From Podarcis tiliguerta (taxonomy: Eukaryota): 64,000 nucleotides of DNA. A program made the position numbers and the translations under genes. The notes beneath the pieces are model-generated. The model saw nothing but the letters and a program-made list of their open reading frames with translations. It was not told the DNA's origin and made no database searches. Numbering within the stretch: the first letter of the stretch is position 1; every line of letters begins with the position of its first letter. Shown in pieces: positions 6,562 to 47,300 of the stretch. The stretch lies in assembly GCA_965153285.1 (NCBI GenBank), contig OZ229120.1; one strand, 5' to 3'.

Positions 6562-7715
6562 GTCAGTAGACCTTCAGAGCCGAGAGAGATGCTCTTCAGC
6601 CCCCTGGGACTTCCGGGGTGTTTGGGGTGGCGGTGAAGAAATGGTGAAGAGCTTTCCTTGTGCCATTTGGTTGCGTCTGTCTAGTATCCAGCATGATGTT
6701 GGATCACAGTTGCCATCATCCCTGAGTGGCTGGGCTGATGGGATCTGCAGTCCGACAACATGTGGAGTCTTTCAGGCCCCTCTCTTCTTCCTCATCTGTA
6801 CTGAAGCAAAGGCTAGCATGGACTGCTCCTGTGACCCAGCCAGGAGATGAAAATGTTGCATGCTTCTTCCACGCAGCATTCTTGCATGACCCAGAAATTA
6901 TGGAATCCTTTTCTAAAGCTCCCATCACCTCTTGACTTCAGTCACAACTGATCCCGGCACAATGACCGTTTAAGGCATGCAAGGAAAAGTAATCTTACGC
7001 AACACTCTGAACTTTCTTCTAAGGCTATAAGTGGAAACGCTGCTGTTCATTTTTTTTTTTAAAAAAATAAAGGCCCGTGAATTAAAGCAGACCTCTTGGT
7101 TCTTCTTCTCAGAGCCCATTTAGGCCAAGAGGGTTTCTGTCGACTGCAGAGGATGGTTTGTCTCAAGCTCTGAGTCCGCAGGTGAAAGCCGTTCTGTAAT
7201 TCTGCCACAGCAAATGAGCAGGATTTTGTTCAGCGGCACACGGCTTGTTCTCTACAGTATACATATTTTGTTTTTAATAGATGATTTACTGCTTTGGGGG
7301 CATTTGGACTTCCAAAAAGCAGCAGTAAATAAATTGTAGCAGCAACAGCACTCTGGTGGTCTCTTTGACGTATTCTGTAGAAGCTTGAATTCCTCCAAAA
7401 GTTCAGACCATTTCCTGATGTGGTTTGGAGTTGCCATGTCAATTCCTTCTTGCAGGGGTCGGGGGACCTAGTCAGACGGTTTTGCAAATTGATTTGATGT
7501 ATTTTTAAAGTTTTTAATTTTAGATTTATTTTTTGTATGTGGCCACAGTTTTTTGTGATGTGTGTTTTATAAAATATCTAAATGCATGTTGTTGTGCCTT
7601 TCAGCACTTTGGGGGCTGCTTCATATGGGGCGATAAAATAACAGACGTGAGAAAAGTGGGAAGATGGATGGGGAGATATTTCTGGTGAAGTTGCTGATGC
7701 CCTTTCTCTTTCCAG

Positions 7716-7839
7716 GAGGGCCCTGGGGAGTGGTCCACCCTGGAAGCTGAGGTCTTGATGAAGGGCCATGAGGTCTGTGGCACCAAAAACCCAACACCTC
7801 ACCAGATTTTGTTGGATACAAGATTTGAGTTGCCTTTCG
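7716..7839 (+). CDS. UNC13B: UNC13B exon 5 (124 nt): [41 protein letters not shown]
   Basis: tttccag acceptor, G|GTGAGT donor. WSTLEAE and NPTPH are UNC13B-type. Phase 0 to 1. Confidence 0.97.
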
Positions 7840-10604
7840 GTGAGTGCAAATGACTTTCTGCCATCCCCCGTCATGCTCTGTGAAACTCAAAGACTCCTCT
7901 TCCCTCTTGCTGCCCTGATGTGGGCCCACCGTGAGGGTCTTTTCTTAGTGGTGGTTTCCTTCCAGGAGTTCGCTCCAATTAAATCAGGCTTACGGTGCTG
8001 TATATGGGAGGACAATTTTGAAGCCCTGAGGTTTTCTTGCAGCACAGCATTTTCCATAAGTGGGGTGTGTGTGTGCTTATTTCACATTGCCTAGCAACCA
8101 GTAATCTTTATTCAAAGTCATCAGACTGCTGAATGCAACTAATAGAAGGAAACTTGAAGGTCCTTTAGTCCAGCCCCTATTATACAGTTTCTGAATTTGT
8201 TTGTAAAGTATGATTGGTAATTCTGAACGGAGAAGTTTGCAAATAATGCAAGTAACAGTAGTATCCTTTTTGAGGAGGGCCAGTCCACTCTCTTCCTATT
8301 TGGGGGTTTGTCTGTGTCTGTGGAGGGGGGATGGGGCCTTTCAGGCAAACTTTGAGAGGGAGGGAGGGCACAAATTTGGCTTGTGTTTCTTCTGGGGAGG
8401 AGTCCTCTCTGCAGCCATTGTAACCCCCCCCCGAAAAAAAACCCATTTCAGGGATCAAACTGCAGGCCAAGAAATGCACCCTCCAAAGCAGCCTCACTGA
8501 GGCTGCCAACTTGGATGCCCGTTTTACTGGACTATTTCTTTGTACAGTGTAACGGCTGTTGCCACACAGGCTTTAGCTGGCATAGTTTGGCTCAAAAATG
8601 ATTCCTCTAGTGCGACATTCCTCGCTCTCTTAGCTGTTCAGAACGGTGCACAAGTTGTAAATAGTCTGAATTGTGTGCCTCCCCCTCCAGGAAAGGTTTC
8701 TGCTGTTTCAGGGGAGCCATATCTTCCAAGAAGATGCAATGATGCTTTTCAGATACTATTATAATTTCATGCTTAAAGAAATACAAGAAGGCTACTTCTG
8801 CTTAAGGAGTTTGAGAACCAGTGAATGCCGTGATGGGCTCTCCGGGGCAAAAAGTAGGGCCCTTTCCAGCCTCAGCATCCCAGGGCCATGTGCCTTTCAT
8901 GGTTCCTTGCAGGTGCAGGAATGACGTGCTCTCAGGATAAAGATTGCATCAGTATCGAAGGAGCTTTAGCGTTGTGGGTCCCTCCTTGGTCACTGTCCTT
9001 CCTTTTAACTTTGAGTATGAGATCACTTCTCTCTCTACAGCAGTATCCCACCATGCCCCCCCCGGGGGGGGGGGGAGAGATATATTTAGAAATCTTGTGT
9101 TTCATTTCCCAGGTGAAAGCGCCCCTCTCCTATGTGATAAAATGGACTTGGAAGAAGCGGTATACCTGTGTGTTTGGTTCAGCATGTTTATATTCATGGA
9201 GCGAGCTTTGGCTTCAGATGGCTTAAAAAGCTCTCCCACAAGCCATTTCCAAAGTTGCTCAAGGCTTTCTTTGATGACAGAGAGAATATAATGACCTGGT
9301 GTGGAGCTGTTGCATGTTTGTGGTGGTGTTTGCGAAACGAATTGTCTTATCTCGGATAAGATGCCCAGAAGCATGCTATGGGAATGGCTCCCTGAAGCCA
9401 GGATGTGACAGGCCCTTGGCAGTCCCCTGCCGCTCTGCCTGGGCAGTGCAAGACAGGGACACGTCTGAGGACAAGGTTTCCATCCCTTTTTGGAAGCAGA
9501 GTTCTTGACTGTGTCATTGGGCATGTCAGTAGTTAGCTCTCTTCTGGCTGGGGCTGGTGGGAGTTGTAGTCCGACGGATCTGGAGGCCTCCATCTTGGGG
9601 ATGACTGAGTTAGAGGTGCCTTGGTTAATGGGGACGGGGGGACATTTTGAAGCTCTGTGCAGTCCCAAACCTTCCTGTGGTCCTGCAGAGTGCAAGAGGT
9701 CTCTCCTGGCCCAGCACTCCGCTTCCCACTTAACCTGCCAGAGTTTTCTGGGAGATTTTCCAGACATGCCTGGTTCCATCACCTGCTTGAGGCACAGGCA
9801 TGCTTCCCCTTGGGCCGTGGATTTTGTGTTCTCCTCTTTTCATCTCCAGCCTCCCTGCCTTTCCTTTCCCCCCTTAATCAGAGTTCCAAACATTCTGGAA
9901 TTGGGAAAGCCAGCAAGAGACTTGACTTTTATGTTGCTGGATTTGTGATGTTTTCCGGGGTTTCCATTCAAAGAGACCTCTGGGCCACAGCTGTTTTTCT
10001 GCCTTGCCTCTGCAGTCGGTTGTGCTTTGCCGCCTCCTGTTTCTCAGTCTGATCTGAAAAGTGGGGAAAGTATGAAACATTAATTGAACCTAACTAGCGC
10101 TTGTTGACACCGTGCCTGCTGTTGCTGCCGCCCTCCTTGTTCTGACCCTCCTCTGCCTCCGCCCTTGGCCAGGAAGTCATGCTCCTCCTTCCCCTTGGCT
10201 CTTGGCAGTGTGCACCTGCCTCACCTGCTGACACAGTTCCCTTTCTGTAATCTGACTGTGCAGCTCGCAAGGGTCTGTCCACCATTCCTTCTGTTCTCAA
10301 TGAGCCCAAGAAAGCCGTGTTGTTTTTACAGCTGTGTGTGTGGTTTTTGTTTCTATTCTTAATTGAACCAGCATCCCTGGTCATGTGCTGTTCTGCGTAA
10401 GCATGCTCTGAATTTAAAAGTACATGCCTGGCCCTATGGATGTTCTGGGACGCCCAGTGCTGTGGCATGGTTGAGGCTGGGCAGCTGTGGAATTGGGTGG
10501 GAAGCTTCTGGGGCCCCCATGTCGGAGCAGAATATGCATATAATAAAATATATTTTGGGGAACGGGGATGGGAGCAGGCGCCTGCTTATTCTGCTGTCTT
10601 GCAG

Positions 10605-10678
10605 ACATCCCGGAAGAGGAAGCCAAATACTGGACTCAGAAGTTAAAGCAGATAAACTCCTTGGAGGAAGATGATGAG
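10605..10678 (+). CDS. UNC13B: UNC13B exon 6 (74 nt): DIPEEEAKYWTQKLKQINSLEEDDE, helical extension of C2A (RIM zinc-finger contact region)
   Basis: ttgcag acceptor, GAG|GTGGGT donor; matches Munc13 DIPEEEARYW. Phase 1 to 0. Confidence 0.95.
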
Positions 10679-12088
10679 GTGGGTATGCTTTGCTCTGCTG
10701 TGCTCCATGCACACTCCCGCCTTGGGACCTCTTGCTGGAGTCTGGCCAAATGCCCATAGGGGGTTTCTGGGGATCTGGATAAGGTCAGGTGGTATACCCG
10801 GCTCTGGATTGCACAATTTGTGATTTCAGCCGGGTGCCCCTATGCTGGAATGCTGCCCATTGAGCAGACATTCCTACAGGCAGGAGGAAGGCTAGTCTAG
10901 GACTGTTCTTCCCCATGCATAGCAGGCCAGGTGCCAGGGAGAATTGGCTGCCCTTTCTGGTGGGGGGTGAGAGCATTTGTTCATTTACAGGAGAGGATAT
11001 CGGACGTGGCAAGTGAGTGGCCTCAGTCCAGCATACCTGAAGGAGTGTCTCCACCCCCAGCCTGGACACTGAGGTCCATCTCCCAAGGGCCTTCTGGCGG
11101 TTCCCTCCCTGCGAGAAGGGAGGTTGCAGGGAACCAGGCAGAGGGCCTTCTCGGTGGTGGCACCCGCCCTGTGGAACACCCTGCCAGCTGTTCAGGCTGA
11201 CTTTCCATTGCACCATCGGATAAGACGAGCCACCACTTTTGAAAGCGACAGGCTAACTGAAGGCATTCTTTGGTTCTGCAGTTATTTATTAGAAATACAG
11301 GGGAAGAAGGGGGGGGGGGGTAACCAAGACCCCAAGGGAAACTCCCGTTTAGCAACGAAAGAAAAGCCCACTGAATCCGGGGGCTGCATTGGCTAAAAAG
11401 AAATCTCAAGGTGGTGCTTCATCTCTGCAGAGTGCCTGCATGCAGGTGGGAGAGGTGGGGGCAGGATTTCTGCCTGTTGCACAGCTTTCCAGGCCATTGG
11501 TCTTCTATTGGTGGGTTGGGACCCATTGCCAAGAAGTGGCCTGATCTAAGGTGGGGCACAGCAAATACAGAAGGAAATGGCTCCCCCAATGCACCTGTGG
11601 GTTTAAGGGTCTGAGAAGGCGGAAGACCACTGTTCTAGCGCTACCCTGCGCCCTCAATACTTCCTTGCATTTTTATTTAATTTAAACCATTTATGTTCTG
11701 CCTACCCAAAGCGCAGGGCGGTTCACAGCAAAGATTAAAACAGTATAAAAACAGTACAACAAAGTTTGGCACTACCAGAGTCCCAGTTCCTGCTCATTCA
11801 TTTCTGCTTCTTTTCCAGTCCTGTTCCAAATCTAGGCAGGGCTGCACAGGAGAAATCAAACTCAGCTTGCCAACACTTGGGGGAAAGTGTTTGGGGCTTT
11901 GTAGCAACCAAGGGGGGCTCTGGAGCAGGTGCCCGGAAGCTTTGGCGTGAAGCAGGGCAAATGTTTCTTTGGGAGAGGGGAGTGTTTGGTTTTATGGAAG
12001 AGGAGAAAAGTGCCCCTAAATGAGATAGCCCCTGTCTGCTGAAAATCGTTTTACTGTGTTCCTCATCTCTACTCATTTTCCCCCTTAG

Positions 12089-12146
12089 CATTCGTTTGCG
12101 GAAGAGGTCCAGAAGCAGCCGCTGCCCACTGCTGCCTCCCAGTGTT
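12089..12146 (+). CDS. UNC13B: UNC13B exon 7 (58 nt): HSFAEEVQKQPLPTAASQC
   Basis: ccttag acceptor, GTAAGT donor; similar to mammalian YSSQEESQRKPLPTAAAQC. Phase 0 to 1. Confidence 0.93.
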
Positions 12147-14083
12147 GTAAGTGAGAAATGTTCAGTCGCTCCGTATTTCAGTCCTCCAGTAGGTTGCCAT
12201 GCTTTGCTTTCTTTCTCCAGTAGAGCAAAGTGTGTTTGCTGAGCTGTCAGTACTTCAGAACCCTGGCAGTAATGATCCCTGTGCCAGCCCTGTCTGTCTG
12301 GGTCTCTCTTGGTGGTTGCATTCAGACACGGTGTTTGCCTGTCCTTCATTCTGTGGTTTGGAGAGTGCGAAGTCTCAGTGCAGCCAACTTGGGTTCAAGG
12401 GGGCCTGTGGGGCAGAGGCAGAAGCCTCGCTTGCCAAGCCCTTTCCTTGCTGCCAACAGCATTCTTGGCCTTGCAAGTCTGGTCAGGCATGAAGCCCCGG
12501 CTGGCCACTGCAGGGCCCCCCTGTGTCGCATGGCAATGGGAGCCGAAGTGGACTGCCTCCTAGGACGGCCGCTCTCTTGCTCAAAAAACCGGACCCCTTG
12601 GGCCAGGTGTCTTTCAGTGTGTGGACAAGACTGGGTTTTCTGGTGGAAATGGGAGCATAACATCCAAAATCAAATAACAACCTTCTGCATACAAAGCGGG
12701 AAGCGTTCTAGAGGCCTTGATTCTGCATCAGCATAAGTGGCCTGGTTCATGCTTCTCTGTAGCCCAGCATGGAATAAACAATGGTTTGCCATGAGTGAGA
12801 ACCCATGCTCAGCCCTGCCTGCTTCACTCTACCCCCAACTGAAGCGCAGAAGCGAGACCGCCTGTCTTACCCTTGATGTGTGAAGCAGCACTTGCGGGAT
12901 ATTTTCCTCCAAACTGTAAGCCCAGCTTTGCTCGCTGCTCATATGAGATAAGCCGCCGTTTGTTTCCAACTGTGGGTCACTGTCAGATGCTTCCATTGTC
13001 AAGCCAGGAGCTCCAAGTGTCAACGACGACGGCTCCTTCTGCAGGCCAGGGTGCCCCTATTCCCAGCCCTTCCCCATGCCCTGGGGAGATGTGGGGCTGT
13101 GGGGATCTCAGCGCTTACTGCACAGCTGCAACTCCTGCCCAGTGGTGCTGCTATTTGGATGCAGGGCGCAGGAAGGGGCGAGGGCAGTTCTGTTGTTTTT
13201 GTTAAATGCTAGCAAAGGAAACAGAACAGATCCAGCTTTTCCTTCCTAAGTGGTGTGCCAATCTCCGGGGCTTTGTATATCTGAACTGCTCTACTCCATT
13301 GAAACCTGGTAAGACTTGGTATTTAGAGTATTACATGTTGCCAGTTGCTTATCCACTAGGCTGATTAGAGGCTCTCTTCAAGAAGGTTAACATTACGAAT
13401 TGTTAATTACCCTGCTGCTGGACAAGCAAATTAAATATCTAGTAGCTTAATTACTTTTCTAATATCACTGAGTGGCATTGTATTAACTCATTACTCAAGT
13501 ATTTATTAAATTTTTATACCACTTAATAGGAATGAAAAATTCTAAGTGGTTTACATAGAAACTTTACAAAAGCAAGTTTTTGTGTGGGGATCCCCCCCCC
13601 CCTTTTAACTGACTTGGATTGCACAGGATTTGGAGAAGGACATTGACTTAATTGCATATTAAAGTCCCTGTGCGACTGAGCAGAAGAGACAAAGGGTTTG
13701 CAGTTCACTGCATTAGTGCAACTGAGCTGCACAGCTCTAAGCCCTGCAGGGCTGGAGATCATCCTCGCTAGGCCTGTGGATGGCAAGTGGGCACAGGACC
13801 AGGCTTTGCAGTTCATTACAAAGGCTCCATCCAGCTGTGCGCTGGGCTCTCCGCAGCCGCTGCGAAAGGCCTGCATGATGGAACAGGGAGTCGGGGGAGA
13901 TGCCTTGCCCTTCAGCTGTGGTTGACTACAACTCCCATCATTCCTTGGCTGAGACTGATGGAGAAGCCCAGAATAAGAGGGGTGTATGTGTTTTAGTTTC
14001 TTTATATTAAAAGCCATGGTCACAAAATATTCCTTATATTTTCGTGCATGGAAATGCACCTCCTAATTTCAGAAAATATCAAA

Positions 14084-30238: not shown

Positions 30239-30461
30239 CTTTTGAAGACCACGATAGTGCTGTGGATGACAGAGACAGCGACTACCGCAGTGAGACCAGC
30301 AACAGCATTCCTCCCCAGTACCACACCACCTCGCAGCCCAATGCTTCGGTGCACCAGTTCCCTGTGGCTTCCCGCCTGCAGCAGCAGGGGGTCCCCCGAG
30401 AGTGCTGTGTGGAGTCCCTGCACGGCTATGATTTGGACTACCACGAACGAGCAGCCATCAG
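30239..30461 (+). CDS. UNC13B: UNC13B exon 8 (223 nt): [41 protein letters not shown]...[11 protein letters not shown]
   Basis: ttctag acceptor, AG|GTAGGT donor. Carries the conserved Munc13 [18 protein letters not shown] motif. Phase 1 to 2. Confidence 0.97.
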
Positions 30462-32105: not shown

Positions 32106-32512
32106 TTGAGACGCTCCAGAAAGTGACTTGTAACATTTTAGGTAGCTGCTCGATTACATTTTTAATCTGCAATTCCTGTTCTTAACAGAAGTTTATAAAT
32201 AACGTACCATACATCACTTTATAGTATACATAACACTGGTATACATGTTTCATGCTCTCCTACCCTTACAACCCTACTATTTAGCTGCAATATTAGTAAA
32301 AGAGAGATTCCTAACATTTCACGTTAATAAATGGATTCATTGTTATGATATTTTAATATGCTTTCTGCATGTGATTCACGATATCATTTGGTCTTTATGA
32401 AATGCTCCTTTGCAAGTTTTGTGTTTAAAGCTCTTTTTTCACCCCTCCTGCTCTTTCCTTTTTTTCTCTGCCCTTCTGTCCTTCTTATATTTTCCCCCTC
32501 CACACGTATCAG

Positions 32513-35500
32513 ACCAGGATCTTTAGTTAGCAATGGGAAAGTCAGGATCATTCCATTTGATTATGAAGTTGGCCAAGAACAGGAAGAGTGCGAAGAGAAC
32601 TATGAGGAATTAGGCAAACAGTTAATAGAAGATTTTTTAGAAAAAAGTCACAGGACTAGAAGTTCACAGGGCCGAAAGAGCCCGAGGCTCTCGAAAAGGG
32701 AGAACTTTGGCCATCCTGAAAGAGCAAGATACTCACGGAAGGCTTGCCCAGAATCAGGACATCCCGATGTTCCTTGCTATCCAGAGGAATATGACACAAT
32801 AGACAGGAGAAGAAAGAAGAAGCTGAGATATAACAATTTTGAAGAATGCGAGCGAACTATACTGCAAAGCAGTAGTAACCGGAGATTTTCTTCAGGCAGC
32901 ATTAAAGCAAGAACTGAACATAACCTATATCCTGATTATGATGAAACTGAGAAATGGGGCAGCAGCCCCATTGAAAGTGAAGAACAGTTACCGGAATATC
33001 CAGTTCTGCGTCCGTACAAGAATGGCCTTCTAGTCAAAAGTGGCAACTTGTCTGCTAACCAACGCGCAAAGCATGACTCAGGATCAGTCCATTTTGATGG
33101 TGAAAATGAGATCCATTCAGAACAGCCAGCTCACTCTTTTGTGCCATTGGGTGCCCTTAAAGAGTTTGGCAGCTGTTCGTCCAGTGTACTCCTGTACTCC
33201 CCAGTTTCGGATGATGATGAAGAAATGGAAGAAATAGCAATACTTTCCCAGGCATGGCGTGAATCCAGCGTTCGCCATGTTGGAGACCTTACTGACGCCC
33301 GTACTGGAAGTGCCATATCCCTGTTACCAAGGGACAAAAACTCACATAGGATGAGAGGAGGAAAGCACGGCTTTCTTAAGCAAGACTTGACCCTCTCTCC
33401 TGTTGAAGAGCCAACGGAAGAATACGTGGACACAATGGATGAACTGCAGTGCTTAGTTGAAACTGTGTCTGAATACTTAGCTGAAAAAGAGGAGGAGATT
33501 AGCAAATTTGAAACCCTTCCTGCGAGCAAAAATGCAAGCGATGGTGCCTCTCCCAAACTGGCCAGTGCTGATAAGCTGGCGGAGGAAAGTGCCCCTTTGG
33601 AACAGGCGAAACCAGCCGCTTCTGCTGCAGAGGAGAGTGAGGGCAGCAAAGGCATAACAGAGGCACTGCCAGACTTGTCTGGGGTGAAGAACACGGTCAG
33701 CTCCTTATTTAGTTCTTTCACCGAAAAAGTGGGCTCAGGAACAAAGCACTTAACAGCCTCAGTTGAAAAACTTGTATCTCCCACACCAGAGAAACCTGAA
33801 GCCCCTGGTCAACCTGAGGGAGGCATCACAAGTCTGTTTTCAAGTAAGCCTAAGTCTGAGGGTGCCTCTCCAGAACCGAAAGCAGAAAGCAAATCGGATG
33901 CCAGGTTGCCCACTGCAACTTCCCCTTCTGTGACCCAGAGTAGCCGTGAGCGAGAAGCCGGTGATGCCAAGGCCAGCATCCCAGAAAAGACAGCGGGAGA
34001 CAACAAGGCTCTTCCAAGTGTCCAGGGTGCTTCAGCAAACGCTGCTCCGCCCCCTTCTCTGGACCCCAGCTCAGTTGTGAACTCCGTCTTAGGCATCTTC
34101 AACCCTTTGAAAATCTTCTCCGAAAAGGAAGCACCGAAAAAAGAGACTGCAAAACAAGAGGAGGCTGTGAAGGTGGAAGCCACGCATGCCTTGGCTTCTG
34201 AAGCCAAGGCAGGTGGGAAGGCAGCTGAAGGCAACGCGACAAAACCCACCAACGTTGCGCCTCCTGAAACGAGCAAGAGCGAGGCAGAAGCGAGCGCAAG
34301 CAGCGGCCCCGTCTCCTCCATCTTTGGCAAGCTGTCGAGCTCCGTTAGTTCTTTTAGCTTGAAAGCCAGTTTTGAGAGTCTGGCTGTTCCCAAGCAGCCA
34401 AGTGGGCCGCAGAAGGCTTTTGATGCGCTGCCGCAGGCCACAAGTCAGCCAGATAAAGTTGTTAAAGAACACCCAGACATGCCAAGAAATCCACAACCTG
34501 CAGGGAAAGTGCCAGAAAACAAGCCAAGTGAAGCCAAGAAGGAGACTGGTAACGCTCCGCCGTTGGAGCAGAGGGAACCATCTGAGAGCTTTTTCAATCC
34601 ACTTAAGAAATCCTTCAGCCAGTTGCTGCTCCCTTCTTCTGCTACTGAAACTGTGCCAAAGGAGCCACCACCGGGCTTGGGGAAAAGTCACCGTTCTGAA
34701 GATGATGTCAGGAAAACAAGCTCCGCAAGCAGCGAACCCAACTTCCCTTTCACCGGTAAGCTCCAGATTCCCTTTTTGAGCGGTTTTGGTTTTTCAGACA
34801 AACCACCGCAGGACAACAAAGAGAAGCCAGGAATTTTCACTTCCTTCTTGAAAGCTGCTTCTGTGGAAAACCTGACAGCTTCAAAAGATCAAACTGCCCC
34901 ACCAAGTTTTAGTGGCAAGCCACCAAATGCTGAAGAGGGTCACAAAAGCAGCAACACGGAAGCTGCCAAAATGGACCCGTCAAAGTCTCAGGCAGTTCCC
35001 GAGGCACCGCAGAGAAAAGAGGAGCCGACGAGGAAGAAAGAACCCAGTAAAGAAGTTGGTCTGGGTGCACCAAAACGTGGAGATAAAGACCAGGGTGCCT
35101 CAGACACTTCAAAAATTGCACACATGGATCATGATACCAAACGCATGGGTGCTCTGGACCACAAGGATTCCAAATGCAGGGGGGAGCCGGCAGCCCCCAC
35201 AAAAGAACCTGACTTAAATACGACAGCAGGAAAGCCAGTGCTTCCTGGTGGAATCAGAGAAGACCAGGTAATGGATGATGCTCAGAGGAAGGCCCCACAG
35301 CCAGGGCAGGGATTGCTCTCGGGCCTCTTCCGGCGGGCGTCTTCAGACCACATAACCCACACGGAAGAGTCGAGTGCTAAAAATGAAACGGACAGCCAGA
35401 AGAGCAGATCAGCTGGCTTACTTTCTGGATTATTTAGGTTTGCTTCAAGTGAAAACCTGACCGAAAGTGTGCCAGATAAGGCAAAATCAGGCTCTCTGGG

Positions 35501-38500
35501 CATAATGAAGTTTTTTGAGAGGAGCGAAGAGCCTAGTTCTGGTGACAAGTCCGTTGGCTCACATGTGACTTCCGGTCCCCAAGAAAGCACTGGGGGGAAA
35601 CCGGAGACGGGCAGCTTCATAAAGAACTTCATGCAGAGGCCTAAAGAAAAAGCGGAGGAGGCAGTGACCGAGACTGCGAAGGCGAATGGTCATTTGCCTC
35701 ACCCAGAACTGAGCAAAATGGACAACGGACATGGTCCCGTCCCTTGGCACCCCCCCTCTCAGAATGCTTTAAGATCACAGCCAAAGATACAAGACTTATC
35801 GGGGCAGCCAACTCTTTATAGACAACCTACGGATTCCAATATTTATCAAGCAGTTCTCAACGAAAGGTCAAATGAATTTCTCAATTCCTCTTTGCTGAAT
35901 GCTAAATTGTATGGCCACTCAGAGCAGCATCTTGCTCTTGAGGAAACAAGGAGCCACTCTAGCTTTGACTGGGAATATGATGCAGGAGCATTTTCTCTCA
36001 ATGCCCACCAGGTTTCCTTGCCCGTTTACTACGTCTTGCAGCAGAATTCTGTCCCACTGGCTGAGTTTCTGGAATGGCCAGACTCCAGTGATGCCGTAGT
36101 GAACTTGTGTAAAAAAGATGGCAATGCCAATGTTGTGGATTGGAGGTCAAATGCCAATTTTGATGCCCTGAGCATGGATTTCAGTGTCATGTCACACGAA
36201 TCGTTTGATCAGTTAGACTTACAAGATTTAGGTCTAGAAGAAACTGAAATGTGGGCAACGCATTCTCTGAATGGAAACCTTCCTCCATTTGATGACTGCA
36301 GCTATATTTTGGAAGAGATGCCCATGGACTTAAGCTATTCGTCGGCATGTGATGGCAATATGTGGACCTTAATTGATCAGGAGTCCTTGAGCCTGGAAGG
36401 CAGTTTTGTCTATTCATCTTATAGCCAGGAGTACCAGGACTGGCTGATGCTGCTTGAGAAGGGCGTCTGGTGGCCATCGGAAGAGGGCGATTGTGGATAT
36501 TACATGTACAGGGACGGTCAGTTTGTTTATTCCCTGCTCACCGACCCCACTGGGCAGTATGTCTACATTTGCACTCCTGACACTTACACCTACCCAGACT
36601 ACTGGGATTATAATTATCCGCAGAGCATTTTGCAGAGCACTGTCTTGGAAGATGACATGATTGCCGTTTGCGGTTTCAAAGTGCCTCTTAGTAATGAAGA
36701 CGAGTTATTCTGGTTTGCTGAAGAGGAGCAATTGGATAATTACTCTGTAAACAAACCACTTGATTTGTCTGTAGCTCTGCAGAGAAGTGATCAACTTATG
36801 AACATGAATTTAGAGACCTTTTCGCAGATGTTTGAGGAGTCCATTTATTACCAGAGAGAGCAGCCTTTAGACTTTTCAGGGTACAAACTTCAAAAACTCA
36901 AAGTAGACTTTAGGCCTGAGAATGACATGGAGTGGCACACAGAAGAGCCTCCCCTGACCCTTGACCTTAGAGTTCACTCCAGGGTGGCTTCCAGTGGGAG
37001 GCTAAAAGATGATGCTCTGCCCAAACATCCGGACAGGACCCCTGCTGTGACAGTTTCTGAAAGTGCACAGTCAAAACGGTTTGGTTTCCATATATTCCAG
37101 TCTTCTGCTAAGCCTGAGCCTTCATCGGCATCTCAGAGTGTTACAGAAGTCAAAACCACTGAAGAAGATAAAAAGCCACCTCTGAATAAAGTCGCATCTT
37201 TATTCTCTGCTTTGGGTGGCCTGATGGGTAAGGGTACGGAAGCGCATGAGACAGTGGAAGATGCGGCTGTGAAGAAAGGAGAACCGGCGGTGTTGGGACA
37301 CAAAAACGATGCTCTTCCAGCTTCGCCACCCAGGAAAACAGGAGAGGATATGCAAAACCAGCAGCACACGGAGCATGAACAAGAGAGAAAAGAGAGAGGC
37401 AGATTAGTTAAGTCCGTTAGGGATGAAAAGCCAGTGATTTCTCAGAAAAAGCCTCCGCTGGTGAGGTCTTCCTCTCAGCTCAGCCAGGGTCCCATGGACA
37501 GCAGGACCAGTCAGCTGGATAAAAGTGTTAAGCCTGCTCCCCTCCCAAGTCAACAAAAACCCAAAGTGGGTGAGGATGAACCCAAGAAAACCCAGCCAGC
37601 CCCCAGCCAAGCACCCGCGGAGGCTGAGGGCACGTTGTTTAAAAGTGCTCTCAAGATTCTCAGCCTGGGAGAAGACTCCTCCACACCTGCAGCACCCAAT
37701 AAAAGTCAAGGCCCCGGGTTCTTTGATTTCTTTAAAACGCAGGTCAACAAAGCCCCACAGCCACCGCCAGCACCCCAGCCAAATCTGACGAAAAATGAAG
37801 CCGAGAAGAAAATGCCTCAGGAGAAAGTGGAGCCCCCAGGCATTTCATCATTCTTTGGTTCCATAGGGGATCTTTTCAAAGTCGATGCAGCCCCTGCCCC
37901 ACCAAGTGCCGCTGCTCCACCAAAGAGTGGAACCCCCACCTCCCTGAAACCGAATGACAACGCGGACCAGCGTAGCCGAGAGCCAAGTAAGAGCAGCACT
38001 CCTGCTCCTCGAATCCCCGTGGAGCAGGCTCGTGGGAACGCTGCCCAGAAGGCCGCAGTCCCCAAGGAAGAACAGCATGGGAAAGTAGGCAAGGAAGCTG
38101 CTCCAGTGAAGAAGGAGGACATCCCCACCGCAGGGAATGCAGAACCCAAGCCTCCCATGCAGGCAGGCCCTCGAATGGACCAAGCAAATCGCTCTCCAGG
38201 GCAGCATGGCCACGGACCAGCTGTTGCACCGGGACCGCAAGGCCATGCAGGAGCCATGCCTGGTAAAACTCAGCCAGGAAAAGCCAGTCAGCCACCCAGG
38301 GATTCTGGGTTTAGCCTGCCTTTTGGCTTATCTCAGGCAGCACCTTCGAAGCCTCCGCAGGCCCCGCAGCCGGCTGGCAAGAGCATCTTCTCCTCCTTCT
38401 TCGGTGCCCCAGAGAAAGCCCCTGCCCCTGCTCCAGCAGCTCCTAATGCCAAGCCCCCGGAAGGAGAGGGTCTGTTCAAGATGCCTTCTTTCTTTTCCGG

Positions 38501-41402
38501 AGGGCCCACCACAAAGAAGAACGTGCCTCAGAGCAGCTCCAGCTTCAGCTTTTTCAACCTGACCTCCTTCCTGGATGACAAACCACCGGCAGCTGCTCCT
38601 GACAAGGGGAATATTGCAAAGCCACCTCAGCAGCAGGCAAGCACCCTGGGAAGGCCGCCTCAACAGCAAGCAGACGCAAAGCCTTCTATGAAGCAGTGTG
38701 TTTCTGTTGACTCTGGCATTGGACTTGCCAGACAGCAGGGCTTGAAGGATAAAGAGGCAGCGGCGGGTGTTATAGAAGCAGTACTTGGAAAGCAAGAGGC
38801 TGTTGGTCCGGAGCACAAGGCAAGTGAGTTAAAAACTCCTGCGGCTGAGCATGCTGCGGCAAGTGCTTCAGAAGTGAAAAATGAGGTAGAGATACCTTTT
38901 GTGGCCAGTAAACCTCCTGATGATGGTACAGATAGAGAAGACCACTCAGTCTATTCTGATCCTGGCTCTCAGGTCCCTACGCTGCAGGAAGACATTGCAC
39001 CTTCCCTTCCGGAGATTCCACAACCAGAGGAGCAGCTGCAAGACAATGCAGAAAAGAGTGGTGGTATTGTGGTGTCCTCTGAGAAGGAATTTGTTCCTTT
39101 AGTTGAGAACGAGACTTTTGAAAAGGCAGAGCCCGCTCCAGTTTGTGATGAGACCTCTGTGGCTCTTGAGCCATCTCCTGCTCCTGGAGACCTTTCACAG
39201 GAGGTTGTACCTGAAGAAAAACCAAGCGCCCCTGAAGTCAAGCCCCCGGAGCCCAAGCAACCTGATAGGACCCCAAATACTGAAGTCAAGCCCCCGGAGC
39301 TCAAGCAACCTGATAGGACCCCAAATACTGCAGGAGAGCAGCAGGCTCAGGGCCAGAGGCCTCTCCCTCAAATGGCAGCAGCAACACCTAACCTGCAGGA
39401 GAAACCTAAAGAGCCTGAGGCTGACAAATCAGTTCTAGATTCCTCCGTTGAAATGTTTTCCAGCTTCATGACGAAGATGAAACCAACCAAAACATTATCT
39501 GGCTTCTTTTCCCAGCCTCAGACTCCAGCAGCTCCTAGTGCCCAAAAGAAGAGCACTTCGTTTTTCGGCCTTTCCTCCCTGCCCACTGGGCCTCCTCCAG
39601 CATTTACAAGTGATCTCTTTGGCATTTTTAAAGGAGCAACAGACGAGACCCTTTCAAAGCCTGCAGGGAAGACCGCAGGCACTTCAAAACCCCAGGAAAT
39701 GAGCTCCAGGGCAAAGGAGGCCGTGGGCCCAGTTCCTGGTAAAGGTCTCGCAAAACAAGATAAAGCCTCTAGGGACGAACTTTTAGGGACAAATGCCGGC
39801 AGCGTTTTGAAACAACCGGACCAAACCTCTAGGGCTGAACCTACAGAGAAAGAAGCTAGCAGTGACTTGAAACAAGATGCCCCTTCTGCTTTAGCAGATG
39901 AGAGTTTGGGGAAAGAATGTAGGGCAGAATTGGAAGCTGAAAGCAGTGGAAGACCTGAACATGGTCTGGAACCCTCCCTTAATGCTTCAGAAACTTTAGA
40001 CTCAAGTAGGGATCAGGGCCCTGAAGTGGTGCAGCTGGACACAAACTTACTGGCATCTGATGAAGCAGGGAAGGCTGCCCCGTGTAGTCCAGAGGTACAT
40101 GATGCAGTTGAGACGGTGGTGCTGCAGGAGAAGAGTGAAGTGCCTGTGGAGCCCTTAGAAAATGATGCTGTCCCTGCTGTTGAAGAGCAAGTGAGCCCGG
40201 CAGGAGAAACAGACGTTGGCCAAATGGATTTGGAGAGTACACGTGAGCTGGAACCCAAGGTTGGTGAGGCAGATGAACACCCGAAACTGCCAGAACTGAC
40301 GGATACTTCACTAACCACTGAAGAAGTAACTACAAAGAATGAGGCAGATGTTGATATTTGCCCACCAGACACGTTTGAGACCCTGGAGATGGAACCCAAA
40401 GCTGCTGCAGATGAGGCCCATGACTTGCCCCATCAGGATATAGAAAAGGTCCCTGAAATAAAATCTGATCTTCCTCCTGAGCAGAAAGAGCCTCTAACCA
40501 TCAGCGAAGCAGCCCCAGAAGCTGCTCCCTTGAAAAGCAGTTTGGCTGGTAAGAGCAAGCCAGCCGGTGCTCCTACAGAGGCCAGCGGCACCAAGCCCAT
40601 GTTTGAAATTCCAAGCATGCCCACTTTGCCCAAATTCGGCTTCATGTCTTCTGCAGACAGCAGCAAGCCATTTGGCTCCTTCTTCTCTGCACAGCCGCCT
40701 TCGGCAAGCAAGCCTGCGCCTGAGCCAGGCCTCGTGTCCAGCTTCAACAAGTTTTCCTCAAGTCTGTTTGGTGGAGGAAGTGATGAGAAAGCAGGTAAAG
40801 TAGAGGGCACTCCGGCTGCTGTGTTTGGAAAGAAGCTGGACTTCTCATTTCCGTGGCAGAAAGATGCCAAGGAGGCAAGTCTCAAGAAGGAACCAGATGT
40901 GCCAACACCAAAAGCTTCCTCCAAACAGGAGGTGGCCCCAATTGCTTCATCCAAACTGGATTTGAAGGCACCAGAAGCTGTCTCAAAAGCCGAGGAACAA
41001 GCAGTGGATGTGACCGGGGCTGATGGGAGCCCAAACCTCTCTGCCTCTGACCAGCCAGCTGACAGTGCTGCTGATTCAGACCTTTCTTCTAAGCAGCCCG
41101 ACAGCAAGAGCAACGAATGCTTCGATGGTCCCACACCTGACATTCCAGTTGCGCCCAACAAGGAGCTGGAGCTTGAGGTCTCCAGAGAAACGGAAGATGA
41201 GCCAAGCACCATTTCCAGTGAGCCTCCTGGGCTCCCTGAAGAGGAACCAGCAGAAGGTGCCACACAGGTTCAGGATGAAGTAGAGCAGAAGGAAAGTGTC
41301 CCTTGTCCAGAAACGGAAACACTTGCTACTGGACTGCAGCCGGCGGAGCAGAGTAGCCCTGAGCCACTCAGGAAGAAAAGGCCAGTAGCCAAAACAGCAT
41401 GA
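32513..41402 (+). CDS. UNC13B: Giant in-frame exon of UNC13B (~2,960 codons, mostly low-complexity/disordered). Either a cassette exon 32513-41380 using a GC donor, or a terminal exon ending at TGA 41400-41402.
   Basis: 9-kb uninterrupted ORF (32358..41402). An ~80-nt AG-free pyrimidine tract ends in the AG at 32511-32512, giving phase-2 entry in frame with exon 8 (AG|A CCA GGA = RPG). The ORF's first 51 codons are intronic. Confidence 0.9.
39232..39327 (+). repeat. 48-bp in-frame tandem duplication inside the giant exon (EVKPPE[P/L]KQPDRTPNT x2)
   Basis: Two copies, 39232-39279 and 39280-39327, with one mismatch. Confidence 0.95.
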
Positions 41403-41902
41403 TAAATGGTGCCAACTTGTGAGCCATTTATAATGCACGTGCTGTAACAGTAGATGCCTGACCTCGTAGATCAGACTCCTCTAGGCTGTGTTTGGCATTA
41501 GTAGTACCCAGTGGTAGGTAGAGTTGTGACCGCTAGTTGCTAGGCTGCCCACCCAGAGCCTCCCCTGCCCTTCTCCTTCTCGGCTTCTGGTTTCCTTTGT
41601 TCCAAAAGATGACGCTTCCCCTTTGCTCTCCGTTTGTGCTGTGTCCTTGTGAGTGAGCTGCTTTGAGTATTAGTTTCATCAACCTTCCGTAGCCTAATTG
41701 TGTGCGTGAGAAAACAACCTGTACCTCTAGATGACATGGTGGGAGGGAGGAAATCGGGGGCTCTCTTGGTTTGCAGAAAGCTTAGTTGGACAGCATACAA
41801 GGCATTCACATTTTAAGATGGGAGAGAGACCCAGATGGCAGCAAAAGCTGATCCAGTGGTTGCAGTTCAGTCCCCTGCAGCATAACTTTTCTAACACCCA
41901 GA

Positions 41903-42123
41903 AGGGGATTCCGACTAAACATCAGGGAAAACTTTCTGACAGTAGCAGCTGTTGAACAGACTCCCTTGGGAGTTGGTGGATTCTCCTTCCTTGGAGGTTT
42001 CTAAGCAGACATTGCCTGGTCTTCTGTCATGGATTCTTGAGCTCTGATTCTTGCATTTAGGGGGTTGGACTGGATGACCCCTGGGGGTACCTTCCAACTC
42101 TGCCATGCTAAGATTCTGTGATT
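41903..42123 (+). mobile_element. CR1 LINE 3' end
   Basis: AAACTTTCTGACAG...GGGTTGGACTGGATGACC...CTTCCAACTC...ATTCTGTGATT tail. Confidence 0.8.
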
Positions 42124-42794
42124 AAAACCTTCTCCCTCCCACCAGTTAAACATGGCCGTGGACTATTAAGGTACTAATGCAGAAACATCCAGTTCTTGCT
42201 GCTCAGAAGCTGTTACTGCTCAGCTAACAGGATTCAGTTTTTCTCTACTTTTACCAGCTGTATTCAGCGGCATTAGCTGAATGTGCTTTTCTGTGTTAGG
42301 CTGCGGGCATCTGGAGCCAATGAGGAGCTCCTTGGCGCCCCATTAGGTCTCCAAGCAAGCTGATAACTGGTTTTCTGGTTTACCATATCTCAAAAACATT
42401 CTTAATTATTCCATATTGAAGAGAATTGCAGTGATTTCATGTTACAGCTATCAGTGTATTAGTGACTTTTGCTCCCTGTTTACCCCTCTCCAGGGGATGA
42501 TTGGGGCTGGTGTTCTTGCTGCCCCTCCCTAGTTACAGAACTGCTAGTTACTAAAACCATTGCTAAATCTGCACTCCTCACCCGCCATCTCTAGACAACT
42601 GGCCCAGCAGGGATCCTGCTTCAAGCATTTTCCTTTCTGCCCAGCCTGTTTTCCAAGGAATAGATGGGATTTTCACACTGTAGCTGCCTTGGGTCCTCTT
42701 GCAGATATCTCTGCCTATGTGGGCTGCCAAAAGCCAGGCAGCACTTAAATAGCGGCCCAGAAGCATTTGTGCCCCTTCCTTCTTAGAATTCCAC

Positions 42795-42798
<4 letters not shown>

Positions 42799-42831
<33 letters not shown>
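42799..42831. repeat. (GA)n microsatellite
   Basis: Direct reading; a compound (TG)n(AG)n tract also at ~52970-53014. Confidence 0.95.
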
Positions 42832-42834
<3 letters not shown>

Positions 42835-43458
42835 GTATTGTTGAATTAACAGCTCCTGGTGCAGTAACTCCAACCTTATAATAATCAGTCACTCCCAAGC
42901 AGCGACAGCAATGGGCCCATGTTGTGCTGGAAGACAGGGCTGATTTTTCTAAACGGCAGCCACAACAGGATCCATTCTCAGCCGCTGGAGAAACTTAAGA
43001 ATGTGCTAATGAAATGGGAGTAAAGATGAAACCCTCATGTCCCAGAATCCACGTGCAGTTGACATGCTAGGGGCAAACGTCGTAAGAAGGTGTTGAGCTT
43101 AGCAGCTTAGAGGTTCAATGTGCACGGAACTTTTGCTGCCTTTCTTAATTTTCCTATGGCCTGTAAACAGTTTACAGGATGCGCAGCAGATGATGCTATC
43201 TGTTCCTGATTGATATATCAATAGGGTCCAGAGGCTTAGGCCCAGCACAAAAATTGCAAACACAAACTTGGAAGTGGCGGGCGACTGAGAACAGTGGCTG
43301 CAGTGTGCAAGAGACATTTGCTTGGCTAGAGTTTCCATTTGATGCTTTGGCCTGGTGTAGTTAGGATTTGCACTCTCTCTCTCTCTGCGTGTGCATGCAT
43401 TGTGCTGTTTCCTGGTTGCCAAGACCTTTGGACTTACTAATGCCTTGCTCTCTCACAG

Positions 43459-43758
43459 TCCTGCCAGCAGTAGTAAGTTTGGTTCCTCCTGTAACATCAG
43501 CCAGGGAAGCTCTCAGCTGAGTGAGCTGGACCAGTATCACGGGAGTGTGCCCTGCTCCGAACACGAGGACGAGCTCGCAGAAGGGGTGCCCGCTGCTCCT
43601 CCTCCTCCTCCCCCGACAGAGGGCCCTGCGCCATCTAGCGAGCAGCATGAGCCCCAGGAAGTGCACAGGGAAGGAGAGGGGAAGGTGAAAGAGCATGCCA
43701 CACCTCAACTACCTCCTGAAGCGGACGAGCCCAAAGAAGCCACGAAGACACCGGGCAG
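43459..43758 (+). CDS. UNC13B: UNC13B exon 9 (300 nt, phase 2-2): (S)[27 protein letters not shown]...TKTPG
   Basis: Branch point TACTAAT (43435-43441), cacag acceptor, AG|GTAGGT donor; matches mammalian [28 protein letters not shown]. Confidence 0.95.
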
Positions 43759-44211
43759 GTAGGTGGTGCACGTTGGCCATGGATTCCTTGGAGTTGAACG
43801 TGAGGCCACTTTTCTGGTTGATCTTGGGAGAGGCAAACAGGATATGGGTGTGGTGCCATAGCTGGTTTTGAGTAGTCCACTGGTGCCTAGGGTCAGAAAG
43901 GGGGGGGGGACAACTGTCGTTAAATAAATCTAATCCTCCTCTTCATCATCATCATCATTTTACACCCATCTAGTGACTAATGGGGTGCATTCCTTACAGG
44001 GTTCTCTACCACAGTCCCTGTTGGCCACACTTTTTCTTCTTTCCGTGCCATTCTCTGTCTTTTGCTGGCCATCCCAGGTCTCTTGGGGCCAACTGTTCTC
44101 AGCGTTTGTTCCCACCATTACAATAAAAGGTTCTTTTCATGTGTTGAGTTTCATGAGACTGCTCTTGAATTTCCAGCACTCATTTTTCCCCTCGTTTTTC
44201 TTTTTTGCAAG

Positions 44212-44302
44212 TCACCTTGACGAAAACGAACTTCTCCTGCTTCCCGCCGCAAGAGCCCGCTGGATCCGAGCCATTAATAAAGTGCGGCTTCAGTTTGAAG
44301 AG
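44212..44302 (+). CDS. UNC13B: UNC13B exon 10 (91 nt, phase 2-0): (S)HLDENELLLLPAARARWIRAINKVRLQFEE, calmodulin-binding helix
   Basis: T-rich tract with AAG acceptor, GAG|GTAGGG donor. WIRAINKVRLQ matches the Munc13-1/ubMunc13-2 CaM-binding motif with its anchor Trp. Confidence 0.93.
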
Positions 44303-47300
44303 GTAGGGCCTGTGAACGTGTCCCTTCCCCCATCCTTCCACCTGTGTCTGCTCTTGTAAACCTTGCCGTGACTTTTGTCTGAAGGTCGCTTTGCTTGTCT
44401 AAGGGAGACACCGTCCTGGGACAGCTGCACAAACGGTGCGTGTGCCTCTCTGGTACCAACAACTTGCTGAAGTTGACCGTGGTGACCTTAATTTGTTGAC
44501 CTCAAGGCAGAGGGGTGCAGAACTTGTGCCCCACCAGATTTTGTTGGACTCTCTCCTCAGCCCCAACAGGGCTGGGATTGGGGTGAAGTTGGAGCTCAGC
44601 GACATCTGGGGGCACCAAGTTGGCTACCTGTGTTGTGTAGAAGAACCAGAATTATTTATGGAAGTGTTGCATTGACATCACTGTTCCGTTGTGTCTGTAG
44701 TTTGTCTTCTGAGGCCCTTCTCTATGTTCCCTCCCCAAAAGGTTCGGAGGGTGACAACACAAGAAAGGGCCTTTTTTGGTGTGGCTCCCCGTTCGTGGAA
44801 TGCTCTCCCCAGATGCTTTCCCAACCCGTTGTGGGTGTGTGGGAGAGGAGACCCTTCCATGAACTACTGTGCTGCTCCTGGCGGCCTCCCGATTTCACTC
44901 CAGAGAGCACCCAGAAGCCGAGTGTTGTCTGAACAGGCCGGAGCAGAGAGTGGCAGCAGGTTCCCTCTCTGCCCCGTGTTGTTGTTGACTTGTGTCATTT
45001 GGATGCTGCCCTGGCCAGCGGAAGGCCATTGATGTGCCCCGGATCAAAATAGGCTCATGTTTGCAACCTTGTCGTTTTAGATGGATCAGAATTTACACAA
45101 TGTCACCGGGCTTAGCATTGCAACTGTGTTGTTGAGGTATCACAAAAGGGTCCTTAGCAGCAATGATATTTTTCATGGAAAAGGGAAATCTGAGCTTAAT
45201 GTGGGGAAAATACAGGGTGGCAGTTTTAGGGGATTCTGCAAAATAAGACCACGCAAAAGGAGCACCTATCTAACACTGATGTCAGGCTTTCTTAGCAGTT
45301 TCTCACACAGGGCAGAAACTGTGTTTTGCTACAGAGAGTATCAAAACACTTTTGTAATTCTTAAGCAAGTCAGAAGCCTGTTGAGTTGAATTAAAAGATC
45401 CTGACGGGTGTAAGAAATGTGAGATATTTACAAAAAGCCGTCAACCCAAGAGCTTTAACAGAACAACCCGGCGAGTTTGTCTGTCTTCTGAAAAATGCTG
45501 CTTTGAATCATTTAGTGAATTGTTTTGAAAAGTAAAACTCTCAAGAGCACTGGAGGCTTCTGCGCACAAAGAGAATTGGTGGTGTGTGAACGACAAGCGG
45601 CTCTTGATGGCTGCAAGCAGACCCCTCGTGCCTTCAAGTGCCTCCCTCCGTCTGCTTTCTTGTGGGCCAGAGAAACTGGCAGGATGCGCCGTGGAAAGCT
45701 TTTGCCATTGCGAGATGCTGCACTGGCGTCTCTCCAGAAGCACCAAGGTTTTCTCTTGATGCGTCTCCTGGGAGCGGGAGATAGGAGTACAAACTTGTCT
45801 GCTGTGAGCAGGAAGGTTCCTTGCGCGCCTGTCAAGATGGGTACATTAACTCTTTTTCATTATTCTGGCTTGTGCTTGTGTCGTGCTTCACTATTCATGG
45901 AAGAGAGTTGTATTCAGTAGCAGCAACTATAAGATGGGTATCCCCCTTTGCATCTTCTATAACCTTTTTTGGAAACTCTTATAGTTGCAATACTCATCCT
46001 CAGTTGTATCCATTGCAGAGCTGTTGAGGATAGCAAATTATCGTCCCAACTGGAATTTGGTTCCAGTGGAAATAGCATGTTTCAATAACGGACCTGGTGG
46101 AGTAGGCTCCATTCCTGAAATCATTTGACCCAAACTGGAGCCTGGCAATTCAGCCCTGCCCTCGCACATGTGTGCGACCCACATGGTCTGTGTCATCAGG
46201 CAAATCAAAGGTTTGGAACATGGATGCCTTCTTTTGCTTTGGGCAGAGTCTGCCTCCCCTGTGTGGGCCTTGGACACTCTTGAAATGCAAAGGTGCACAC
46301 TGGTTAAAGGGTGAATTTTCCACATTTTGGGGTTCTCCTCTGTTGCAAATGAACCTTAACCAGTCCTGGGTCAAATCGGGACTTGAAAGCTGTGGATGTT
46401 TGGCTGAAATCTTAATCCTTTCACACCAGATACGCTTGGAGTTCAGGCAAGCAAGCCAGACTGTGAATTTTGCTCTGCTGCGTTTGTCAGCAGCTGGTAC
46501 CGCAGCTGTTGTGTGTGGAAAGCAAAACGGACAAGGAGAGCCTTGTGTGTCTTGTAGATTTAAGTACTATGAAGCGAAAGGCTGGTCAGAGACACCTGTC
46601 TGTCTTGGAGTTGCAGGTTCCTGTGTGGGGCTACTGGTGTGGAAACATTACATCTCGGGGGCAAAATAACAAATATGTTTCACATAGCGTAGAAAAGACA
46701 ATACATATGTAGTATTATTCTAAAAGTGTTATGTGGCATATACTTTTGACATCCCTTTAAAAAAGCTGTTTACATTTCCATATGAGATTATAGTCCTTTT
46801 TGTGTGTGTGTGTGGGGGGGTGTATTTACACGCATTAACTCCTGGCGTAGTAGCTTGAATATTGGCAAAGTCTGCATGTTGTCCTTAATAAAGTTTTTGA
46901 CACTTATATCCAGGTTGATGAATTTTCATAGGGCTTTCTGGGTAAATTGAAAGTGAATCCATCTGGAATGAGAGTCAGGAGAGAATTATATGTCAATAGC
47001 CAGGCTTATTAAATTGATACAAATGAATCGTGTCTTACCTTCTTGTTGTTGGCAAAGGAGGACCATTTTGGAAATCCTTGTAATGTTATGTGGAGGTAGC
47101 AATGTGTATTCTCTGGGGAACTGATGGGGATCTTCTGATCTGGATTGCAGTGAGGGGCCAGATCACATTTTACTAGAAGTTGCAGAAGGGGAGCTGCGAG
47201 GGCCCCCTAGGATTTGCTTTAGCAACCCAAGGCAGAGGGCTCCTCCTCTAGAAACCCTCCCGTCTTGGCAGACAAGATAAACATACACATACTAGTTCTT

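Follow-up and report, generated by a model that had tools for sequence, protein, structure and literature searches.

What becomes of a coding exon of 8,868 nucleotides (nt) when its best 5' splice site is weak and an in-frame stop codon follows closely behind? UNC13B, the gene for Munc13-2, raises this question in a 64,000-nt stretch of the Podarcis tiliguerta genome (assembly GCA_965153285.1, contig OZ229120.1), hereafter the window, which was read on one strand, 5' to 3'. An earlier note, made from the sequence alone, had suggested that this exon could switch the gene between a giant full-length protein and a truncated scaffold lacking the MUN domain. We propose, with a probability of roughly 0.62, that the main role of the exon is that of a composite terminal exon, whose product carries a C2A domain and a long disordered region but no MUN domain. 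Munc13 proteins are essential vesicle-priming factors, and the giant exon would add ~300 kDa to the output of UNC13B.

The window holds a single open reading frame (ORF) of more than 300 amino acids (aa), at 32358-41402 on the plus strand, and its ~3,000 open codons far exceed chance expectation. The exons and splice sites around it are as follows, with slashes marking splice junctions.

30241-30461, plus strand: upstream ub-type exon ('exon 8'), placed by tblastn with a Zootoca model (P0001); ends ATCAG/GTAGGT, phase 2.
32440-32512, plus strand: pyrimidine tract and AG acceptor of the giant exon (...tatcag/A at 32512/32513).
32513-41380, plus strand: giant alternative coding exon of UNC13B, of 8,868 nt (2,956 codons), with islands of conservation in a mostly disordered product.
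41378-41386, plus strand: weak GC 5' splice site, AAG/GCCAGT; the exon end is 41380.
41381-41402, plus strand: read-through codons (R)PVAKTA and stop, with TGA at 41400-41402.
43459-43758, plus strand: next common exon ('exon 10'), starting ctcacag/TCCTGCC and ending CAG/GTAGGT.

The exon ending at 30461 hands over two codon bases and base 32513 completes AGA, while the first ~50 codons of the ORF are translated pyrimidine tract upstream of the acceptor. The 3' end of the exon reads ...CTC AGG AAG AAA AG/G CCA GTA GCC AAA ACA GCA TGA, and a cut after 41380 leaves the bases AG, which join the T at 43459 in frame. The features of a GC-AG intron are present (GC at 41381, AG acceptor at 43458/43459); such donors account for ~1% of sites and are over-represented where splicing is alternative (PMC3167603, PMC2490688). 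Positions +4 to +6 of the donor (AGT) follow the consensus and +3 (C) is a mismatch, so that the site matches CAGGTAAGT at six of nine places, as against eight of nine for the donors at 30461 and 43758. On a rough 5' splice-site matrix, built from approximate frequencies and usable for ranking only, 41380 is the top-scoring in-phase GT or GC donor within the last 1.5 kb of the exon, in keeping with the earlier description of it as the sole convincing donor near this end. The ORF, phases, coordinates, GC donor and adjacent stop described in the earlier note are likewise present in the sequence, as is the symmetric 8868-nt (2956-codon) cassette, its length confirmed as a multiple of three.

Strong cryptic GT donors also lie inside the giant exon, for example CAA/GTGAGT at 38823, and an exon of such length would require repression of its internal cryptic splice sites. 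An Ensembl-type Podarcis muralis model (P0110; 1,638 aa) takes as its cassette only a 166-aa inner piece, at 38784-39281.

RNA bears directly on the fate of the exon. Reads or contigs from four runs were placed on 38100-44000: X1, labelled 'RNA?', as Logan contigs, X23 and X24 as bulk raw reads and X21 as single-cell data. Four further features are needed to read them.

39232-39330, plus strand: 48-nt (16-codon) tandem repeat, 2.1 copies by Tandem Repeats Finder, with EVKPPEPKQPDRTPNT present twice.
41403-42140, plus strand: putative 3' untranslated region of a truncated mRNA, covered by RNA as far as 42003 or beyond; its 3' boundary is guessed.
41843-42236: interspersed repeat (...GGGGTTGGACTGGATGACCCCTGGGGGTACCTTCCAACTCTGCCATGCTAAGATTCTGTGATTAAAA), whose core at 41959-42000 is highly expressed from other copies (depth ~400 in X1).
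42121-42126, plus strand: ATTAAA, a candidate polyadenylation (poly(A)) signal at the end of the repeat element.

The long contig of X1 differs from the window at ~3-4% of bases and comes from a related lizard. A second X1 contig (544 nt, depth 213) links the final ~30 nt of exon 30241-30461 directly to 43459-43758 and on to the following exon, its loose ends mapping to 30432-30458 and 44212-44241. Because this contig joins 30461 to 43459, X1 is RNA; and since a run of 110 million letters cannot yield depth 19 from genomic DNA, its giant-exon contig is not DNA. That contig (3,500 nt, depth 19) covers 38130-41668 and passes both 41380 and the stop uninterrupted. Its sole gap is a 48-nt in-frame skip at the tandem repeat (39254-39301), so the related lizard has one repeat unit fewer, an in-frame copy-number difference between lizards. 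Further pieces of X1 extend into the intron, one of 180 nt (depth 9.5) at 41639-41818 and one of 119 nt (depth 17.9) at 41894-42003; the bins at 41843-42236 are inflated by the repeat, and depth is zero over 42237-43418. Nor does uniform precursor mRNA explain X1, since it would have covered the 1.2 kb of this intron that are empty. RNA that continues past a 5' splice site into the intron, here to 42003, is what a terminal exon would show. The read-through past 41380 that the earlier note envisaged is thus seen in RNA of a related lizard, unbroken across donor and stop and ending inside the intron.

Splicing out of the giant exon left no comparable trace. No joint from 41380 to 43459 is listed in the four runs, among which only X1, as contigs, covers the giant exon. 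The X1 contig that links the 30461 exon to the 43459 exon shows no break; a comparable entry from the giant exon should split it, an expectation about assembly behaviour that speaks against such an entry. X23 and X24 placed few reads on the giant exon and X21 matched only the repeat, most reads placed from these three runs being the 42-nt repeat core at 41959-42000. The few giant-exon reads of X23 share their orientation with its reads on the 43459 exon.

Four reads of X24 join ...TCTCTACCTGAAGCCAATCCAGATGATAGT to ~43501/43502, just past 'aacatcag'. The joined sequence, ...CCAGATGATAGT, could be traced to no place in the window even with five mismatches allowed; its in-frame reading is D-S-QGSSQLS, and these may be paralogue reads or an alternative acceptor fed from outside the window.

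Public gene models show both outcomes at the 3' end of the exon. Among 130 homologues of at least 2,300 aa, 32 models (turtles, birds, mammals, gar, teleosts and Lacerta agilis) splice into the next exon at the homologous point (K/SP...) and keep the frame. Examples of the joins are ...NKK/SPAGSS in turtle, ...NEK/SPADSS in eagles, ...TSK/SPTSSS in placentals, ...SVK/SPAGSS in gar and ...SAK/SPVESS in teleosts; the Lacerta agilis model passes from ...PLRKK/ into the next exon, giving 4,525 aa at full length, and the eagles Aquila and Harpia also have full-length giant models. Nearly twice as many models (62 of 130) end in a read-through tail, K-R-[P/L]-V plus 2-13 residues, and the remaining 36 have other tails or skip the next exon. 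A few mammal-like proteins derived from Logan data (P0064, P0068, P0071, P0073 and P0076) contributed their last residues only. Examples of the read-through tails are KKRPVAKTA in lizards, KKRPVTKAA in turtles, EKRLVTNEA in birds, FKRPVTVEA in axolotl, SKRPVLN in placentals, VKRPVAA in sturgeon, AKRPVGA in eel and AKRLVEA in teleosts. The stop falls 4-7 residues past the Arg in 59 of the 62 truncated models, and the short read-through peptide and its stop, whose conservation the earlier note had left to be checked, therefore recur across vertebrates. In the clusters examined, the truncated forms are the lowest-numbered models of Zootoca (X1 and X2; 3,208 and 3,196 aa, from two annotation releases) and of zebra finch (X1-X3; 3,193, 3,181 and 3,138 aa), all with C2 as their only domain.

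Truncated and full-length outcomes, joined at the same K/S point, are thus both represented in public gene models, and the suggestion of two products stands to that extent, a regulated switch between them being hypothetical; in the lizard RNA contigs sampled, only read-through is listed at the donor. The ~4,300-aa giant-exon isoform of UNC13B that the earlier note gave, to be verified, for human was found in models of non-human mammals (4,255-4,448 aa), for which that part of the claim holds.

These models bear on a different account, in which the giant exon is chiefly an internal cassette, its GC donor is efficient where needed and the product is a ~4,500-aa priming-competent Munc13-2; the read-through RNA would then be incompletely processed or minor, perhaps degraded by nonsense-mediated decay. 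The 32 spliced models, an exon length that is a multiple of three and a conserved donor motif all suit such a cassette. The models are predictions, however, and all giant-exon models of Zootoca and zebra finch in the clusters examined are truncated. The sole RNA sample covering the exon lists no joint from 41380 to 43459, and in it the contigs through the donor and through the start of the 43459 exon are both unbroken; coverage after the donor equals that of the exon and then vanishes rather than filling the intron. We regard a chiefly cassette exon as unlikely, though still deserving of weight.

The read-through tails also date the donor. The Arg codon is AG/G and the next codon occupies intron positions +2 to +4, so a Pro codon (CCN) there means C at both +2 and +3, while the Val codon (GTN) of the tail supplies G and T at +5 and +6. 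Pro follows Arg in 27 models, those of Zootoca, Podarcis muralis and 25 others, from ray-finned fish to mammals, and by this back-translation the GC donor appears to be old. Leu follows Arg in the other 35 (birds, most teleosts and one bat), where CTN keeps GC and TTR would be GT. Ser, which a single C-to-T change at +2 would bring together with a far stronger donor, follows Arg in none of the 62 truncated models; as an argument from absence, this fits selection for a weak site.

Beyond its 3' end, the exon itself is conserved. A homology search found 206 proteins matching it, from lizards, snakes, geckos, turtles, birds, marsupials, placentals, frogs, axolotl, sturgeon, gar and teleosts. The match is uneven along its length, and islands shared from fish to lizard occupy exon residues 301-420, 1261-1500, ~1981-2040, 2281-2340, 2701-2760 and the last 22. 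One conserved island carries the segment LSPVEEPxEEYVDxMDELQCLVETVSEYLAEKEEE. Of the differences between the window and the related lizard RNA contig over 38130-39253, at least 33 in number, the 33 listed comprise 17 synonymous and 16 non-synonymous changes, 19 of them falling at third codon positions; the ratio of non-synonymous to synonymous rates (dN/dS) is ~0.29 in this stretch, one of the less conserved of the exon. On these comparisons, 32513-41380 reads as a real coding exon under constraint, conserved from fish to mammals.

What the exon encodes is less readily placed. It matched no Pfam family. The best-conserved part, at 35781-37073, is rich in Trp, Tyr and Asp (WWPSE.GDCGYY.Y.D.Q..YSLLTD.TGQYVY...) and has 21 invariant columns across 29 species; a phmmer search of this conserved centre against PDB sequences gave no match, and AlphaFold2 with 29 orthologues gave no confident fold for it (mean predicted local distance difference test, pLDDT, 35). 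Dispersed over 33690-40860, the alignment consensus shows many short motifs rich in Ser, Gly, Phe and Leu that are kept across vertebrates, such as GLLSGLFKFAS, GISSLFGSxGDLFK, KSIFSFFxGS, SSFSFFxLxSF and NKVSSLFSxLGGL. To us they look like possible lipid-packing-sensor (ALPS-type) amphipathic helices, of the type that attaches to small, curved vesicles.

Might there be nothing functional here, the GC being an assembly error or the frame an unexpressed one, open by chance or composition? A GC donor that has C at +3 is odd, and AlphaFold found no confident fold for the best-conserved part; little else could be taken that way. Yet the Pro codon forces C at +2 in 27 independent models, so that the GC is no assembly slip, the exon is conserved from fish to mammals with an excess of synonymous changes, and RNA contigs cover it at depth 19. 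Conservation, RNA, dN/dS and the Pro codons already refute this explanation.

The identity of the gene follows from its neighbours. The closest homologue is the Zootoca vivipara 'protein unc-13 homolog B isoform X1' (91% identity), and a Podarcis muralis homologue is 95% identical to the giant-exon product. The Zootoca model has a Pfam C2 domain at residues 4-98 (E 7e-10), and its N-terminal exons map to 4963-12163 and 30241-30461 of the window on the same strand. Downstream, at ~44.2 kb, a calmodulin-binding-type motif (ARARWIRAINKVRLQ) lies in an ORF at 43973-44359; the C1, C2B and MUN exons are beyond the window. These matches place the giant exon between the ub-type C2A and linker exons and the common exons of UNC13B. 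We dropped the idea that it is the brain-type (b) N-terminus, because the homologues all join it to ub-type exons.

An older NCBI model of Zootoca (P0125; 3,073 aa) combines an alternative first exon (MANVLHFKLLPSKH...) with the linker exons and the giant exon, without C2A. From this model, a giant-exon form lacking C2A may also exist.

The same homologues argue against reading the giant ORF as a gene in its own right, lodged within an intron of UNC13B and driven by a promoter of its own. Such a gene would account for the many NCBI 'uncharacterized protein LOC...' models of 2,700-3,000 aa that consist of the exon only, without C2, and for a Podarcis muralis model (P0121) that begins at the ATG at 32358. 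That ATG, however, lies within the acceptor pyrimidine tract, the first ~50 residues being translated tract; coding conservation begins exactly at the acceptor, and the first Met inside the exon comes ~240 residues in. The frame also fits the upstream exon, and models of Zootoca, Lacerta, Pogona, Paroedura, finch and others join the C2A exons at ...ERAAI/RPGS; in Zootoca and Lacerta agilis the join, ...ERAAI/RPGSLVSNG, uses the same acceptor as the window. A nested gene is very improbable, while the giant ORF may have an extra internal promoter.

Just 3' of the donor, the RNA is predicted to fold.

41394-41445, plus strand: predicted hairpin, in which 41394-41410 pairs with 41423-41431 and 41438-41445; the stop codon lies in the 5' arm.

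The hairpin has 17 bp and a 6-nt bulge (-18.3 kcal/mol, z -3.0, matched by 2 of 200 shuffles), and its inverted repeat is GCATGATAAATGG / CCATTTATAATGC. In marsupials (..SIINGFKQLTIYNAS..), Xenopus (..ECIINGIRCHL) and snakes (..AHKWRRPVHL), the translated read-through is consistent with the same arms, ATAAATGG / CCATTTAT. Since the lizard reads the letters of these arms in another frame, conservation, if real, would be of RNA and not of peptide; on back-translation, the hairpin may be a conserved RNA element. An Rfam scan of 41300-43500 gave no match. Separately, an 11-nt inverted repeat (91% complementary) pairs 41325-41335 with 41379-41389, its 3' arm being the donor (AGGCCAGTAGC). Burial of the donor by this pairing was rejected, as the pairing is missing from the minimum-energy and centroid folds of 41310-41460.

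Together, these observations suggest how the locus would work. Most UNC13B transcripts would skip the giant exon and give ubMunc13-2; the depths of the skipping contig and the giant exon in X1 (213 against 19) are a rough guide only. Upon inclusion, the weak GC donor (AAG/GCCAGU, with U1 mismatches at +2 and +3) would mostly lose in the lizard RNA sampled, and translation would end six codons past it, at the TGA at 41400-41402. The RNA would end ~0.6-0.85 kb further on, probably by cleavage and polyadenylation inside the intron, where the ATTAAA at 42121 is a candidate signal that could serve the truncated mRNA. The predicted product, of ~3,200 aa, would consist of the RIM-binding C2A domain, a linker and a largely disordered arm of 2,956 aa. 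It would be without the calmodulin site, C1, C2B, MUN and C2C, and is for that reason predicted to be unable to prime vesicles. In Munc13-1 and ubMunc13-2 the zinc finger of RIM is bound by C2A (PMC5379939), and, judging from the C2A exons that it keeps, the truncated protein could compete for RIM or tether through its long arm. The RIM binding, dimerisation and dominant-regulator role put forward in the earlier note would follow from these exons alone. If the GC donor were used instead, the exon would become an in-frame cassette in a full-length Munc13-2 of ~4,500 aa, a form that may be made in smaller amounts or in tissues other than the one sampled. The poly(A) site, the dominant product outside the sampled material, the regulation and the scaffold or competitor function are our inferences.

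Several points weigh against a mainly terminal exon. The RNA comes from a related lizard and not from the window's own animal. Logan contigs lose rare variants and report depth only as a contig-wide mean, so a minority of 41380-to-43459 splicing, or a drop in coverage after the donor, would escape. No poly(A)-tailed reads or pile-ups of read ends were seen, the 3' end is deduced from the loss of coverage, and that loss falls beside the repeat at 41843-42236. Two bulk RNA runs are almost without reads on the exon. Full-length giant models are predicted by NCBI for the closely related Lacerta agilis as well as for numerous birds, mammals and fish; the exon may genuinely serve as a cassette, and in some tissues this may be its chief use. 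For any one lineage, moreover, a stop 4-7 codons past the donor has a chance of ~1/3.

The ORF and both of its outcomes are already in public automated annotation; what is new is the reading of them. We found no paper on the giant exon or on a truncated Munc13-2 in the literature searched, subscription journals being mostly outside it, and the earlier note's statement that no functional description is known agrees with this. The ub and b forms are the only Munc13-2 products in that literature (PMC5379939). As the most visible giant-exon RNA form lacks the priming domains and keeps the RIM-binding domain, a natural competitor or a tether would be expected at release sites, one that standard C-terminal reagents would overlook.

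A broader proposal, which we hold to be doubtful, is that all jawed vertebrates make a third class of Munc13-2, of ~350 kDa, in which the RIM-binding C2A domain is followed by a 2,956-residue arm with Ser/Gly/Phe-rich amphipathic motifs and the MUN domain is absent. Here the donor would have been held at GC for more than 400 million years beside a conserved stop-bearing hairpin, cell type would govern the balance between read-through and splicing, and the product would serve as an active-zone-anchored vesicle tether or RIM competitor. If this were true, a third class of product would be invisible to C-terminal tags and antibodies and possibly spared by knock-outs of the common exons. The giant exon is in addition a clean natural case of a weak GC donor set against termination at the end of an ultra-long exon.

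Within the gene, ubMunc13-2 and bMunc13-2 are distinguished by alternative exons at the N-terminus, and the full priming module is present in both (PMC5379939). Giant-exon forms share the gene and the ub-type N-terminus, including C2A; unlike ub and b, the read-through product would be without the priming module, and its exon lies between the ub and common exons. Giant disordered alternative exons are known from other neuronal scaffold genes, in 480-kDa ankyrin-G (PMC5135030) and in Big tau with exon 4a (PMC9755724). Like UNC13B, these have one very long, largely disordered and vertebrate-conserved alternative exon, but theirs are internal cassettes with ordinary sites on both sides, whereas that of UNC13B has a weak GC donor and then a stop.

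Piccolino, the comparison made in the earlier note, arises when intron 5/6 of PCLO stays unspliced and a conserved TGA is read, the 356-bp intron being retained or an alternative acceptor used; its ribbon-specific expression and its protein have been demonstrated (PMC3735604). In both cases a giant active-zone gene leaves a 5' splice site unused and meets a nearby conserved in-frame stop, giving a C-terminally truncated scaffold from which interaction or effector domains are removed. In contrast to Piccolino, the UNC13B RNA seems to end inside a 2-kb intron, behind a GC donor, and the case is known here from sequence and RNA. The parallel therefore holds for read-through to a stop and breaks off beyond it, where the RNA pattern points to cleavage in the intron rather than simple retention.

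In Homer1a and in secreted versus membrane IgM, a suboptimal 5' splice site competes with intronic cleavage and polyadenylation, yielding a short protein that has the N-terminal binding domain and lacks the functional C-terminal portion, and Homer1a is a natural competitor of the long scaffold. Control by activity or differentiation is established for Homer1a and IgM, whereas the intronic poly(A) site of UNC13B is putative. With its weak donor set against such a site, the UNC13B case would stand closer in mechanism to Homer1a and IgM than to Piccolino.

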